From: Camelus dromedarius
Taxonomy: Eukaryota
NCBI RefSeq assembly: GCF_036321535.1
Contig: NC_087447.1
Location: 7,502,001-7,566,000 of the forward strand
Length of the DNA: 64,000 nucleotides
Direction of reading: 5' to 3'
The stretch's first letter is position 1. Every line of letters starts with the position of its first letter. The notes below the pieces were generated by a model. That model was not told the origin of the DNA. It made no database searches and was given only the letters and a program-made list of their open reading frames with translations. Positions 30,780 to 53,175 of this stretch are shown here, piece after piece. A program made the translations under genes and the position numbers.

Positions 30780-36435
<5,656 letters not shown>

Positions 36436-42404: not shown

Positions 42405-42899
42405 GTCAGAGAGGGAGGCCTGAATCCGGGAGACAGAGGTGGAGTGGCTGGTAGGGGGCAAGGGAAATAAATACAGAGGGGTGGGAGTTGTAGGGTGCAG
42501 AGGCAGAGATGGGGAGCTTAGGGGTAAAGAAGCTGTGGCTGGCCAGGCCCTCCCCCAACAGAGGGATCCCTCGCCTTTGCTAGGCACAGGCAACCTGGGT
42601 CCCTCACTCAGGGGTATGGAAGGACAGCCTTTCCTGTCCGGGGCAGAGAGTGTCTCCTCCCTGGGCCAGCCTCAGAAGCCAGGGTTGGGGGTGGGGAGGT
42701 GCAGAGGCTGAAGAGGGGTCCCTGGCCTTGGTCGCTGGAGTCGTCCTGGCAGGAGGGGGAGAGCCGGCCAATGCCAGTCGGCTCAGGGCAGCGGCCGCTG
42801 CGGGGCGCGCTTAACGCCTGGCTCTCCCCCTCCCCAAACTGGGGGGCTCTCTCCCCTCAACAATCCGGATGGTAGGGCCTCTGCCTTTCGTCCTCGGGA

Positions 42900-44230
42900 T
42901 TCCGAACGCTGCCCCCACCCCACCCCCACTGCGTCCACTCTCCAGCCGCAGGGGAGGGGAGGAGGTCGACGCCGGGTCCTCAGGCCGCCGCTGGGGGAGC
43001 CGGCTCCGGTCGCTGGGACCCTGGACTCCGGCTCCCCGGCTCCCGCTGCTCCGCCCCCTCCTGCGCCTGCGCGGGCGCCGTTCGCTACGCAAATTGCTCT
43101 CAGTCTAGCCCTTGCTCCGCAGCCCTGCGCCGCGCCCGGGGCGGAGCGGTTCGAGAATTGGCGCGAGCTGCGCAGCCGGCGGGCGCCAGGGGTTACGAGA
43201 GGCGGGAGGCGACCGTGAGGCTCTGGCCGCGCTGTATCCGGCCCGCGCCGGAGTGGGCCGTGCCCGGGGCCAGCGGCCCTTGCTTGTTTGGGGGACCGCC
43301 AGTTACCATGCTTCTCTTCTCCACCCCCAAATCGAGATCGTGCCGCCCGACCCGGGGCGGTAACGACTTCTCTTCACCCGATCTCTGAAGGAAACTTCCG
43401 CCCTCAGCCAAGATGGCCTCCGAGGCCCGCCCCCCCCCCCCCCAATCCCCGGCTTTAACTCCCGGGGTCCCACAGCCCGCCAGCCGACGCCCTGGCCGGC
43501 GGCGGTTCCTGCTCACCTGGCCCGCCGCCTGCCAGGCGTGAGGCCCTGCGAGTCCTATGGTCACCCTGACAGGGGCCTCTGTCCTTTCTGTGTCGGGGCA
43601 GTCATCCTGCCAGGGTGGAGGCTCCCTCGCTTATCTCGAGTGCTCCCGCGTTGGCGCGGGGAGTGGCGCCCCTGATGCGGGCGGTGCGAGGGTTCCACTG
43701 GGGGAGGAGGGAGGGGGACTTCCCGATCTGGTCACCCAGTCCAGACGGAGCAGTGACACCAGCAACAATTGCATCCAACGGCTGAGCTTCAATGACGGTT
43801 TTGCAAAGTGCTTTCACCCACAGTAATCACCACTCAGTTTACAAGGATCACTGGCTCCTGAGGGAGGTGTCATCCTCCCTATTTTACAGGGGCAGGAATT
43901 AAGGCCCAGAGAGGCTGAAGGACTTGTCAGCAGAAGCTGGTCCCCAAATGGGGACTCCAGAGAATCCCTCATCTGCTCACACACAAATGCCCGAGACAGA
44001 AGTAAGTTGGGAACCGAGCATCCGGAGACGAAGAAGGGACCCATGAGGAAGACGGTGGGCTGGGCCCCGGGCCGGTAGTGGCCCCGCCTGCTGGCCTGCT
44101 AGTGACATTTCCAAAGCTGATTGGGCCGGAACGATGACAGTTCCCGTTGCCCAGGCAACTAGGGCCGGGCTCCCTCAGCGCTAGAGAGAGGCGGCGGGCC
44201 CGGGTCAGGGGCCTAGAGATCGGGCTTGGG
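42900..44230. promoter_or_regulatory. Shared head-to-head GPR137/BAD CpG-island promoter region
   Basis: NRF1-like TGCGCCTGCGCG 43062-43073, ETS ACTTCCG 43394-43400, YY1 AAGATGGC 43410-43417, ATTGG (CCAAT) 44120-44124, RFX X-box GTTGCCCAGGCAAC 44146-44159; BAD non-coding exon 1 about 44157-44230 with donor GGG|gtgaga. Confidence 0.75.
43948..44074 (+). pseudogene. Relic of the rodent BAD-L N-terminal coding exon with an in-frame stop
   Basis: ATG 43948 reads MGTPENPSSAHTQMPETEVSWEPSIRRRRRDP*GRRWAGPRA; aligns to recalled mouse [13 protein letters not shown]...[21 protein letters not shown]; TGA at 44044-44046. Confidence 0.65.
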
Positions 44231-44516
44231 GTGAGACCTGTCTGCCGTCACCATCGGCTTGTCTGGCGGAGGCCTGGGTAGGGGCCTGGGGCTGCTCCAC
44301 AGCCCCACGGCTCCGAGAGATTTAGATCCTGGATGGATAGACTGAGCTTCCTGCCAGGCCAGACTCAACGACAGATGGGGGCCTGGGAGGCAGGGTGGAC
44401 TTGGGGCTCTGAGGTGGGATAGGGAGCCAGAGGCACCTGCGCCCCAACCCCTGCTGGCCACCGTTTGCCCCAGCTGTGCCCTAACTACCTGCCATCTTGC
44501 CTCCACAGCCCAGAGC

Positions 44517-47500
44517 ATGTTCCAGATCCCAGAATTTGAGCAGAGTGAGCAGGAAGAATCCAGCCCTGCAGATAGGGGCCTGGGCCCCAACCCCACTGGG
44601 GACAGGGCCCCAGGTCCCGGCAAGCACTGCCGAACAGCCACAGGCCTCCTGGGGGAAGCTGGTCACCAGCAGGGGCAACCGGCCAACAGCAACTACCATG
44701 GAGGTAGGCACCCCCTTTACAACAACCACCTGCCTGTCCACCTTACCTCCAGCTCAGTAACTCCCTGCACCCCAGCTACCTCCACACTCCCTGAGTGGCT
44801 TTGAGTAAGTCCCTAACCTCTCTATATCTCTTCTGTAAAACCGAGCAATTAGTCACCACCATTGTAGTGCTGTTGGGATGATTGGTAGGAATATCTAAGA
44901 AGCACTTAATTATAGAGCTGGTGCTTTCTAAATGCTCAAAGTATGTAGCTGTTAGTGTAGGACCAGGATAGAATCACTGAGAAGCAGCTGGAAAGGGGAA
45001 GTGACTTGCCTAAGGTCACACTTGCTTGGCATTTCCACCAAGCAGAGACTCTGCCCCAGGCTAGTACTTTCCCTGGGATTGGGCCTTACAGCTTCCAGCT
45101 ATGTTCCTTCGCACTCGTTGGCTCACACCCTCATGGGGCTGTCCTTGTCAGTTGCCACGGCCCAGTGACCCCAGGAGACAGACGGCCCTACCAGGCAGCA
45201 GGTCTGTGTGGGGCTGGAGAGGCATCAGCTGTCCTCCACACCTACTGAGGGGGACCCAGCGCTGGGATGGAAGGAGGGGCACTGGAGGGCAGTGACCATT
45301 TCTCAGTAGTCCCCATCCACCCAGTGCCCAGCACAAGCCTTAGCACCTGGAACAGCCACAGAGAGCTTCCGAAAACAAACATCACATTCCTTGCTAGCTG
45401 AAGCTGAAATGACACCTTCCCCATTTTCAGGAGCAGGAAGGCTTAAGGTCTCCTTCCCAGCCCACTCTCTGTTATACTGAACTCCACGGGCTTTCTTTAA
45501 CTTCTTCCAGGTCTTTGCACTTGCTGTTTTTCTGCTTTTTCTTCCTTCCCATTCTCTGTCTCAAGTGCTTAATGTGTGTCACATGCTGTTCCAGCTGCCA
45601 GGGAGTACATCAGGGACCAGAAGAGATAAATCCTTGCCCCTGTGGTGCCTACATTCTGGTAGGTGAGGGGAGACCAGCCATAAACAAACAAACAAGTAAA
45701 TGATATAATGCGTTAGAAGGTGATGGCAGTGTGTGACACACTCTTTACTTTCTTGTTGGAATCTAAAGTACCTAGGGGCGAGAGGAGTGACTTTAACTGA
45801 GGTGGCCTTGTCAGGGCAGGTCTTGCTAAGAAGTGACATTTGAGCAAAGGCTGGAAGTGATGAGTGTGAGCCAGGATGAGCCAGGCAGACATCTGAGGGA
45901 GGACATGCAGGCGGACGGAAGGGCATATGCAAAGGCCCTGAGGGCAGGACACAGTTCAGGCCAGGGAAGGGAGGGGAGTTGGAGACACTTCAAGAATTAA
46001 GGGAGGAGGAGAGGCTGCTGGGCAGGGCCTTGGAGGACTAGGTGAGGTCTCCAGCTTTCACTTTGAGTGCAGACATGGAGGGCTTTGATCTGATGTGGGC
46101 TTCCAGAGAATCACTAGGGCACCTGTGTTTTGGGCGTGTCTGCAGTGGGCAAAAGGAGGGGCGGTGCCACAGGGGAGGATGCTGGCCTGGGCCAGGGTGG
46201 TGGTGGCGAAAGTGGTAAGTAACTGGACTCTGGGCTTATTTGGAAGGTAGGATTTGCTGACGGACAGATGTGGGGTGTGAGACACAGAGAGGATCAAGGA
46301 TGGCTGCAAGGGACCTGGGCTGGGCCTCTACAAGGATGGAGTGTCTCTTAACTGAGATGGAACTGACAGGGTGTGGGGCGAGATCAGGAGCCCTGCTTGG
46401 GCCAGGTCAGGTCAGAGGTGCCTTCTAGGCATCCAGGTGGAGATTTCTAGTAGGGATAGAGCCAAGCGGAATTTGTACACGCGGGAGCTGGCAGTCACTG
46501 ATGGAGTGTTCTGTGAGGCCCCAGGGAGCCAAAGTAGACAGGAGAGGACCTGGGCTGAACCTGGGGTCCAGCCTGCACAGGGCAGCAGCAGAGGAGGAGC
46601 CAGCACTGGAGTCTGAGATGAGCCACCTGGTAAGGAGGGGAGTGCTGAACTGGGTGACGAGGGGAGGGGCAGGAGGAGGGCTGGGAGTGGGGTGCAGGAC
46701 TGGACCACACAGGCACTGCAGTTGGGGTGGAGAGCTGGGAGGGATAATGGGAAGAGCTGGAGGCAGAAAGGAGCATCTACTATTGGCAGCTAAGCTCCTG
46801 TCCAGAAGAACAGAAGAGCAAGTGGCAGCTGAAGGCACCAGGAGAGTCAAGGAAGGCTTGTTTTATTATTTTTTAAGATAAAAAGGGAAAAGAAAATAGC
46901 ATGTTTATAAGCTGATGGGTAAACCAGGAGCGAAGAAAACAGGAGGGTGTAGGAGAGAAGGGAGGCTTGCTGGAGAGGTGTTCTTGGGTAGGAGAGAGTA
47001 GCTGGTGTGCAGGGGAGGGGCAGTCTATCTAAGTGCAGTGGGGAGGGTTGGGGGAGATACCTCGTGGGAACTTGTAGAAGTTTCTCTTGTGGGTCCTCCC
47101 AGGTTCTCAGTGGAAGGAAGCCAAGTCCTGAGCCAGGAATGAGGGTGGGGAGAGGGGTGGAGGCTGATGGGGAGAGAGGCCCTGATCTGAAGGGGTCGTC
47201 CAGCCTGGAGTACTGAGTGTCGGATGTGTGCCTGGCCACATGCAGGACTCCCGCCACTGGGTCCTTTGACTGTGAATCTGAACTGAGTTGGCTCAGCTGC
47301 ACTTTCTTCCAACCACCCTGGCCGCTCGCTGTGAGAACTGGCAGAGAGTTGGTATTAACCAGAGCTGTTTGTCTCAGTCCAGTGGAGAGGCAGTGGGGGG
47401 CTTGGCTCTGGTGGGGTGTAAGCTGGCCAAGTATGAGGAATTCCAACTTCACTAGAGTTGGGGTCCCGAGGCAGGAAGCCGGGAAGGACCACTTCAGTGC

Positions 47501-50500: not shown

Positions 50501-53175
50501 TTTCATTGTGTCATTTGTTCTTCTGGTGGTCCTGGGAGACTAGGGCTACTTTCATTTCACAGAGGACACTGAGGCCCCAAGGGGTTGAAGGGCCCAAGGT
50601 CACAAAACAGGAACGTGGTTGAAGTGGGGCCCACCAGGCTAGTGACCCCTGCCCTGCTGCCCATACCCCCACGGAACCAGAAAGCACTCTGCAGACGGGT
50701 CTGTTCTCATCAGGGGTATTGCTGTTCTTGGCTCCTCCAGTCCCATTCCGAATCCCCACTGCTGATTTTGCTGCCCATTCCCCACTGCCAGCTTGTTCCT
50801 CGAAGACCTTACCTACCTGACCCCAGGCCTGGGGTTCTGGGGGAGCCCACGTGCTCCGACCTTGCTCTTAGCCGAGGCCTTTCTGGATCCAGCCCTCTTG
50901 TCCCTTCTTGGCTTTCTCAGCCACCTATCTGGAGCTGGGACCCTTGGAGGCCCTGCAGCCCTGGAGGTGACCCACAGGCTTTGGGGGAAGGATGAGACAT
51001 TGTTATCCCCTGGCTTAGACCTGATCTAGATCTTACTGCCTCCGAAGTGCTTCTCTGACAGATATGCCTTGCTGTGCATGCTGAGCACATTCCCCTGCAC
51101 TTGCTCCATGCCTGTCTTTCATTCTATACTTTGTTGGTCTGGGTATGGGGCTGGGCTTGGCAGGAGGGCAGGGGATGGCCTACAGTACACAGGTCAGACA
51201 AACTTTCGACATCGTAGCGGTGCCTCACTGAATAACGCCCCATCACGCACTTTCAGCTTACAGAGCACTCTCACGCTGTTTATTTTATGAGAGCCTTATG
51301 TGGTCACTGGTAATAAGAGCTAGGTTTATCCCCACAGAGAGGTGAGGACATAGGCTTAGGGAGTTGAACGGTAGTTGGACAAGGGAAAAACGTGGAGCTC
51401 AAAGGATAATCACTGGTTTCTGGATTCCAACCTCTGGGGGACTTCTAGCCTCAGAGCTTCACAGCTATGTGACCCTGGGCAAGTCTTAGCCTCTCTAAGC
51501 TTCTGTCTTCTCTATTCTCTCTAAGCCTCTGTCTTCTCATCTGCAGAATGGAAGCAGTGTTAGTACTTACTTCCCAGGATGGTTAGGAGGATAATTAGGT
51601 TATGCCCAGGGCCTAACACTCAGTTAAGTGCTCCATAAATTTACCTTAAAAGTCAACAGAACTTTCTGGACATTTTCTCCCAAGTGGGTGCTGTGGGAGG
51701 TACAGACTTGCTGCTGACATTTTTTTGTTCTCCAGGGGCCCAAGGTCTCCTATAGGCCACAATAGAGGAACAGACAAGCCCCAGCAGGTCGCCTGCAGAG
51801 CTGGAGTTCAGCCCTACCTGGCTGGAGCAGGACACTTTTTCATCCAGGGGACTGGTTTCCTCTGCAAGAGAATGGAGCTGATGAAAGAGCTAACAGCCCA
51901 GGGGTTGCTGGGAATCCCAGCGTCTTGTACTCATAACTATAACAACCATCTCTAATGCCCTTATTTTGCGCCAGGCACAGAGGAAAGTCATTTTATACAC
52001 AAAGGGCCTGGCCCATTATTGGGGCTCAATTAAGATTTGTGGGATTAATGAGAGGTTATTTCAAATCTTCACAAAAGCCTCATGAGCTTCCCTTAGGAAG
52101 GAACTGGAGCTCTGAGAGGTAGAGTGATATGCACGCAAAGATATCAACCGGCAGGTGGAGCTGATATTGAGGGCTTCTGGACGGCTGGGAGCGAAGAGGA
52201 GTTGAGATTCACATCATCCCCCACCACCCGACCCTCTCTGCAGGCGCTGGGGCTGTGGAAACCAGGAGTCGCCACAGCTCCCACCCAACGGGGACCGAGG
52301 ACGAAGAAGGGACGGAGGAGGAGGAGCCCAGCCCCTTCCGGGGCCGCTCGCGCTCAGCGCCCCCCAACCTCTGGGCTGCACAGCGCTATGGCCGCGAGCT
52401 CCGGAGGATGAGCGACGAGTTCCACGGCTCCTTCAAGGTGAGCGCACGGATGGGCGCACGGGTCCCCGTAGTCCTGGAGCATGCTGGGGACTGTACTCCC
52501 AGGTCTCCTCCTACTGGACTGTCCTGTTAGGGTTCCGGTGCATGTCGGGATTTGCAGTCTCGTGACTCCTCCCCTCCCACCGGCCTGCAAGGCATTTTGG
52601 GATCTGTAGTCCAGACCCCGCTCCAGAAGGCCAAGCCTCCTGGGTTCCCTAAATATTTGGAGCGCTAGGCATGCTGGCATCTGTGCTCCCAGCCAATCCC
52701 GTTCGGATATCCGGGTTCTCTGGCCTCAATTTCGGAACCACCTCTTTAATTCTCGAATTCTGGTCGCGTCTTACAGGTGCTTCCGGATCTCCGGCTCTGG
52801 CCCTAATAGGGTCTTCCTAGGCCTCCTCTCCCCGTCCCCGCTATGGAGGGTCCAGAATCTAACCAGTTCCATTCCTAAGAGGCCAAGCGATCGTTCATGC
52901 CTAGTAAAGTAGTCAGGAGACCCCTCGGTACAGGATCTTTATCTCCCCCGGAATTTCACTTAGCGGTGGGATTCCAGAAGTGGAGGGGCCTGACTTGGGC
53001 TGCCAGGATAAGCTAATTCACTTAACCCTTTCCTCCTCCCACTTCAAAGGGACTCCCTCGCCCGAAGAGCGCTGGCACCGCGACACAGATGCGGCAAAGT
53101 CCCAGCTGGACGCGCTTCATCCAGTCCTGGTGGGGCCGGAACTTGGGGAGAGGCGGCTCCGCCCCCTCCCAGTGA
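44517..53175 (+). CDS. BAD: BCL2-associated agonist of cell death (168 aa)
   Basis: Exons 44517-44703 ([14 protein letters not shown]), 52244-52437 ([30 protein letters not shown]3), 53050-53175 ([17 protein letters not shown]...SAPSQ*); 507 nt. Confidence 0.97.
45570..47680 (-). mobile_element. L2 LINE fragments in BAD intron 2
   Basis: ccttgcccctgtggtgcctacattctgg, gtgacatttgagcaaaggctggaag, gcaaaggccctgaggg, gtcttaactgagatgg, gcatccaggtggagatttctagtagg are typical antisense L2 segments. Confidence 0.75.
47815..48380 (-). mobile_element. 5'-truncated L1 3' end (cetartiodactyl-type)
   Basis: ttttttaattgaagtatagttg...tacagcaaagtgattcagttatacatata...tagattccacatataagtgatatc...gctgctgtgaacattgggtg. 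Confidence 0.9.
48381..48572 (+). mobile_element. MIR with a local ~48-bp tandem duplication
   Basis: cctcagttttcctatctgtaaaatg...; gttaatataggaaaagtgcttagaaacagtgc..gaacaaaggaggat occurs at about 48454 and 48523. Confidence 0.8.
48816..48950 (-). mobile_element. Camelid tRNA-Ala-derived SINE with TSD
   Basis: Reverse-complement head ggggagggtataggtcaagtgatagagtgcacacttagcatgcatgaggtcctgggttcaacc; flanks cagaaatagttgg (48801) and cagacatagttgg (48951). Confidence 0.9.
48972..49275. mobile_element. MER58B-like hAT-Charlie DNA transposon
   Basis: TIRs caggggttggcaaac / atttgccagcctctg; 8-bp TSD gtttagag / ctttagag; internal ggaacacagccatgcac, aaaatatttactctctggccttttaca. Confidence 0.85.
51290..51650. 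mobile_element. MIR fragments, one with a 22-bp internal duplication
   Basis: cagctatgtgaccctgggcaagtc...; ctctctaagcYtctgtcttctc at about 51491 and 51517. Confidence 0.7.

Follow-up and report, generated by a model that had tools for sequence, protein, structure and literature searches.

A probable decayed alternative first exon of BAD beside an ancient MIR element in the GPR137/BAD promoter of the dromedary

The segment at 43948-44074 of the window (the whole 64,000-nt stretch of Camelus dromedarius DNA analysed here) is probably a decayed alternative first exon of BAD, referred to as exon 1a, which lies on the plus strand beside an ancient MIR element and inside the conserved bidirectional CpG-island promoter of GPR137 and BAD. 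The segment is the dromedary ortholog of an exon situated upstream of the main human-type exon 1b. In muroid rodents, the BAD-L extension takes its start codon and 39 of its codons from exon 1a. The camel exon would no longer be able to encode an N-terminal extension. It carries a 2-nt insertion that shifts the common frame, a G>T substitution that made a TGA stop and a deletion shared with cattle that removed the old donor position, and the two-humped camel lineage has additionally lost the ATG. The canonical 168-residue BAD would be produced from exon 1b transcripts. A dromedary plus-strand transcript starting upstream of 43948 would carry only a short uORF or, if spliced at a GTAAGT at 44002, an out-of-frame overlapping ORF. 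We infer that the segment does not function as coding sequence in the camel; today it is most likely promoter DNA, and its conservation at the DNA level appears to be best explained by promoter function. It is possible that it acts as a dispensable short uORF in rare upstream-initiated dromedary transcripts.

BAD of C. dromedarius (P0002, P0134) matches the window at 100%, and the corresponding locus of assembly GCA_036321535.1 (L001) is identical to the window across 16.8 kb. This match places exon 2 at 44509..44703 on the plus strand, with its acceptor cacag/CCCAGAGCATG at 44509 and the canonical start ATG at 44517; exon 3 is found at 52244-52437 on the same strand. GPR137 is encoded on the minus strand, head-to-head with BAD, with a start codon near 42405, and a GC-rich island spans 42800-44500. 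The NCBI models of Camelus BAD consist only of the 168-residue protein and a 179-residue protein starting at 44334, and none of them begins at 43948. The 179-residue isoform of Camelus and Vicugna (P0135, P0139) opens with the ATG at 44334 and requires splicing directly after CTGCCAG, which is followed by GC and not GT (44334-44358). This junction shares CCAG microhomology with the exon 2 acceptor, and the isoform has the look of a doubtful model or of an artefact of template switching. The assemblies also differ in the poly-C tract at 43430-43436, where the window and L001 have 7 nt more than the other two Camelus assemblies.

The BAD loci of three Camelus assemblies, Mus pahari, Ictidomys, Ochotona, Pongo, Meles, Manis, Bos javanicus and Elephas were compared by a MAFFT alignment of approximately 800 nt upstream of the MFQ codon (820-nt alignment), anchored by the flanking genes. 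Xenarthra (Dasypus) and camelids outside Camelus are not part of this alignment, and the pig is represented by UniRef proteins only. The gene order GPR137(-)/BAD(+)/PLCB3(-) is present in all fetched loci and the upstream alignment is collinear from end to end. Within it, the camel ORF aligns with the exon coding for the 42-residue BAD-L extension in Mus, and camel and Mus share 63% nucleotide identity over 43948-44074. The placement of single gaps is uncertain in the GC-rich part of the alignment at 44050-44080. A reading made earlier from the letters of this DNA alone (the sequence-only reading) had proposed that the segment is orthologous to the mouse upstream coding exon, and the synteny-anchored alignment bears this out: the likeness between the camel segment and the rodent exon is orthology and not chance. 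Rat NP_073189.1 (P0158) and Mus pahari X1 (P0162) both contain the 42-residue rodent extension that this reading had named, which confirms it. The 204-residue mouse Bad and the BADL and BADS isoforms are documented in the literature (PMC2192908, PMC2776992, PMC3916415).

The ATG orthologous to the rodent BAD-L start codon is located at 43948..43950 on the plus strand, with C at -3 and G at +4. It opens a 32-codon frame that ends with a stop (43948..44046) and, judged by translation and orthology, is predicted to be the decayed coding part of exon 1a. The ATG, the 32 codons and the closing TGA at 44044-46 are all present as first described. The ATG is invariant in nine lineages (camel, represented by the dromedary, cattle, badger, pangolin, orangutan, pika, squirrel, mouse and elephant) and belongs to the only 4.8% of triplets in the region that are fully invariant. 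This distribution puts the origin of the start codon before the placental radiation. The invariance hints at selection on the ATG itself, though it could equally reflect the core of a YY1-like AAATGG motif. Within Camelus, the loci L002 and L003, which we take to be those of the wild and domestic two-humped camels, contain ACG in place of the ATG (43949 T>C), and they share all 14 of their differences from the window within 43300-44720.

The sequence-only reading had described the camel copy as damaged by one nonsense codon, and this count proved too low. The TGA at 44044..44046 is present in all three Camelus assemblies and faces a GGA codon in both mouse and cattle, so the placement of the stop opposite a glycine is correct. 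In addition to this stop, the camel copy carries a 2-nt insertion and has lost the old donor position to a deletion, and the ATG is missing from the two other Camelus assemblies. The camel-specific insertion is assigned by alignment to 43985..43986, its exact placement within CAAAT being ambiguous, and it shifts the frame that is common to badger, orangutan, pika, squirrel and mouse. This is seen in the distance from the ATG to a conserved AAGT anchor, which is 51 nt in these five lineages, 53 nt in camel, 50 nt in cattle and pangolin and 52 nt in elephant. The match of the camel and mouse frames at the GRRW residues arises by independent indels (+2 in camel, -1 in mouse). At this second anchor the phase is 0 in camel, cattle, pangolin and mouse, 1 in badger and squirrel, and 2 in orangutan, pika and elephant. 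The cattle frame is broken independently by a stop at codon 17, and the elephant frame contains a +1 insertion and a stop at codon 23. An uninterrupted frame from ATG to donor is thus absent in the camel, given the TGA at 44044-46 and the +2 shift against the common frame. It is very unlikely that the dromedary produces an intact long BAD and that the TGA reflects faulty sequencing or assembly, or a rare allele, because all sampled 31-mers of 43930-44110 (100%) were found in six DNA runs and the three independent Camelus assemblies agree on the stop. No point in support of such an error was found, and the old donor would be missing even without the stop.

The rodent exon ends with the donor CAG/GTCGGC, located at +118 from the ATG in mouse and +112 in squirrel. 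Counterparts of its GT are found at +118 in orangutan and elephant, +119 in pangolin, +120 in badger and +132 in pika. From these alignments the rodent-type donor GT looks old and its position is probably ancient. Four of the seven lineages have their donor in phase 1, which is not significant by a binomial test (our own estimate, ~0.17). In the camel, a deletion of approximately 20 nt that is shared with cattle removed the rodent-type donor position, and its junction is located at 44061..44062. The claim that the camel had kept the splice phase is not supported: the in-phase GT at 44075 is a different, non-orthologous site. This candidate donor, GTAGTG (44075..44080, plus strand), is in phase 1 and aligns approximately 25 nt past the real mouse donor, opposite a mouse GGGGTG that is not a donor there. 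The sequence-only reading was right that an exon ending at 44074 (GCCG/GTAGTG) would join exon 2 in frame as ...PRA-AQS-MFQ, broken only by the TGA, and the candidate junction 44074>44509 is possible on paper. A second candidate donor, GTAAGT at 44002..44007, aligns with the donor of pika X1. In pika this donor has phase 1 and joins BAD in phase, whereas the camel site is in phase 0 and out of phase with BAD because of the camel-specific +2 insertion. A transcript of 43948-44001, 44509-44703 and 52244-52411 spliced at this candidate would encode 138 residues in a frame that overlaps BAD exons 2-3 but differs from the frame of BAD. Donor strength was estimated as a crude U1 duplex energy, which is -5.6 and -5.7 for the upstream camel candidates (-5.7 for the GT at 44075) against -9.3 to -9.6 for the constitutive BAD donors. 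The donors of the X1 models of other species are all weak by the same estimate (-4.2 to -6.9), and the camel candidates resemble them.

Two further splice sites had been proposed upstream of the ATG, and neither stood up as a conserved feature. The acceptor at 43927-43933 is skipped by the rodent models, in which exon 1 extends upstream past 43933; the frame of rat model X2 (P0167) runs straight through it. The GT of the upstream donor at 43537 (GT 43538) is conserved only in camel and orangutan and cannot be regarded as a conserved feature.

Proteins that start with MGTPENPS-like residues at the same ATG and continue in frame to MFQ were identified in Meles, Manis, primates, Ochotona, Ictidomys and Sus scrofa. 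The Meles X1 protein (P0027) contains a 34-residue extension, and a 202-residue product is encoded by a 1.2-kb Logan contig (P0193). Extended models are present in two species of Manis (X1, P0035), in four genera of platyrrhines (X1, P0040 cluster), in two species of Ochotona (X1, P0096), in two Ictidomys records (P0028, P0039) and in three UniRef entries of Sus scrofa (P0033). The UniRef entry of Pongo X1 (P0152) spans eight hominid records, and the primate Logan product P0054 derives from five contigs. The non-rodent extended isoforms are mostly automatic models, some of which are backed by Logan transcript contigs (P0193, P0054, P0096). The statement that human BAD lacks the extension accordingly stands for the canonical protein; it does not extend to the hominid and monkey models that begin at the same ATG (P0152, P0054, P0040). 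Queried with the N-terminal 40 residues of the badger isoform, a word-index search of limited reach returned only the query, and literature searches gave nothing specific on a uORF of BAD, on an extended form of human BAD or on exonisation of the MIR at this gene.

These records raise the possibility that the MIR-adjacent ATG already extended BAD in the placental ancestor and that the longer protein is still made at a low level in many non-rodents, primates included, having been lost independently in camels, cattle and elephant. We put this forward tentatively, because the pattern of an ATG followed at 118 nt by a phase-1 GT persists in mouse, orangutan and elephant. If true, the textbook rodent-specific extension would be an annotation artefact. 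The earlier proposal that the long isoform is ancestral and was inactivated in the camel is consistent with the orthology and the old ATG; it is weakened by the lack of coding constraint outside muroids and by lesions more numerous than it had counted.

Mean pairwise identity is 0.49-0.79 over 43948-44074, 0.70-0.78 in the upstream MIR flank and 0.80-0.91 in the core promoter. Counted as minimum substitutions over codons 1-10, the three codon positions score 8/5/11; the total is close to that of neighbouring non-coding blocks, and no clear codon-position bias was found over these ten codons. Badger, orangutan, pika, squirrel and mouse, as well as pig judged by its proteins, keep the first ~17 codons in one frame, with a recurring RKSG-like motif. 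Beyond the ancient ATG and this common frame of ~17 codons in six lineages, no coding constraint could be demonstrated outside muroid rodents. These data bear on a different account of the segment, in which no functional long isoform ever existed outside rodents. Conserved promoter and MIR-derived DNA would have been recruited as coding sequence in muroids and separately in a few other lineages, and the camel copy would be unrecruited DNA with a chance ORF. It would fit the substitution counts by codon position, a conservation of the segment that equals that of its flanks and the occurrence of all three phases at the GRRW anchor. The donors of the X1 models, besides being weak, are lineage-specific (+46, +52, +64, +94 and +112/118), and a stop-free run of ~40 codons is expected about 1 time in 3 at this GC content by our own estimate. 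The invariant CCA.ATG could also be a YY1-like core similar to the invariant AAGATGGCC located 550 nt upstream. We nevertheless consider recruitment doubtful. The one frame kept by the first ~17 codons in six lineages, with its recurring motif, argues against it, as does the identical ATG-to-donor arrangement (118 nt, phase 1) of mouse, orangutan and elephant. Logan contigs of mRNA size from a mustelid (P0193) and from primates (P0054) also code for the extended form. A decayed exon 1a remains our preferred reading of the camel segment.

The core of the MIR-type SINE is located at 43859..43928 on the plus strand and is found at the same position in each of the nine placental lineages that were sampled. 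Dozens of dispersed copies on both strands are matched by a profile of this region, and a copy at 33586-33629 also gave a match in a pairwise comparison. With the profile rebuilt from 38 dispersed copies, 43859-43928 of the window is matched with an E-value of 4.8e-10, and the orthologous site is matched in all other species. The ATG sits 20 nt 3' of the MIR core, detectable homology ending at 43928 with a local profile that is weak in the 3' half of the element.

Downstream of the 32-codon frame is a highly conserved core-promoter block (44117..44159, plus strand; mean pairwise identity 0.80-0.84). It contains what we take to be an inverted CCAAT box (44117-44124) and a palindromic X-box-like GTTGCC..GGCAAC (44146-44159). 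This block is followed by the human-type non-coding exon 1b (44160..44230, plus strand, the start being approximate), which ends at the donor GGG/GTGAGA at 44231. The exon 1b donor is the best-conserved block of the region (identity 0.91), with a U1 duplex energy of -9.3. Products that read through from exon 1b to AQS-MFQ in primate and goat records (P0157, P0034) confirm the junction there. Since the best-conserved promoter elements and exon 1b all lie 3' of the ORF, most BAD mRNAs should not contain it.

Two other conserved sites were observed upstream. At 43380-43420, a block with an ETS-like ACTTCCG and a YY1-like CCAAGATGGCC is nearly invariant from elephant to mouse, and the CCA.ATGG around the BAD-L start, itself invariant, looks like a further YY1-type core, though a weaker one. 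Judged by motif likeness, such a core could explain the conservation of the ATG without a coding role. At 43511-43520, GCTCACCTGG is invariant in most lineages and its minus strand reads CCAG/GTGAGC, a near-consensus 5' splice site that probably ends a non-coding first exon of GPR137. With an exon end at this position, the GPR137 TSS would lie between ~43520 and 43750, a few hundred bases from the upstream ATG of BAD.

Presence of the region in RNA was assessed by sampled words. RNA-seq contigs of one study contain 64-79% of the sampled words of 43300-44720 (X1, X2, X8) and 46-64% of those of 43930-44110 (X1, X2, X29). Such word presence gives neither strand nor splicing and could be explained by pre-mRNA, GPR137-side transcription or DNA carry-over. 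These contigs are compatible with a functional role of the 32-codon frame, which, as a dromedary BAD uORF or through an overlapping out-of-frame ORF, might damp BAD translation from upstream-initiated transcripts. The dromedary does keep the ATG with G at +4, and splicing at GTAAGT 44002 would yield the 138-residue overlapping ORF. A uORF role in the camel is doubtful because the sister species lack the ATG: with ACG in the two other Camelus assemblies, the start codon is unconstrained within the genus. Exon 1b and the best-conserved promoter elements also lie downstream of the frame. Taken together, we regard a functional uORF as improbable.

The decayed exon 1a is of value chiefly for BAD annotation and comparative work, as mouse (BAD-L) and human are not alike in phosphosite numbering or in N-terminal biology. 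At the DNA level the BAD-L start codon is not a rodent novelty, and automatic models in several orders, hominids included, begin at it. In the camel genome, the ORF should not be annotated as coding. The segment exemplifies how a weak alternative first exon that lies in a bidirectional promoter decays in a lineage-specific way, and is otherwise an ordinary evolutionary relic.

The closest known system is rodent BAD-L (204 aa in mouse, 205 aa in rat), in which exon 1 encodes the 42-residue extension ending in AQS. The camel copy has a common genomic position with this exon and an identical ATG in the same CCAAATGG context, and it would use the same acceptor with a phase-1 entry to exon 2 (G/CC CAG AGC ATG). 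Unlike rodent BAD-L, the camel copy carries a TGA and a +2 insertion, is missing the orthologous donor and has no annotated transcript, and its ATG is not fixed within Camelus. The extended isoforms of non-rodents likewise share the conserved ATG and the MGTPENPS-like residues with the camel frame, but they are in frame to exon 2 through lineage-specific donors and contain extensions of 18-68 residues. Another extension that begins with MGTP was observed in Scotinomys-like records (P0012/P0124, L004); its 51 residues are encoded far upstream, in sequence that aligns to ~43140-43200 of the window on the side of the GPR137 promoter. The common MGTP is a coincidence that could mislead a comparison at the protein level.

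The camel frame also resembles the uORFs of mammalian 5' leaders in being a short ATG frame upstream of the main start, which leaky scanning would bypass given the C at -3. It differs from them in that its place in a camel mRNA is putative and that the sister species lack its start codon. A final comparison is with the exaptation of MIR elements into promoters and first exons. At BAD, a placental-wide MIR core adjoins the exon and the frame of rat X2 (P0167) runs back through MIR-derived sequence; the difference is that detectable homology to the MIR ends 20 nt short of the ATG and does not reach the start codon.
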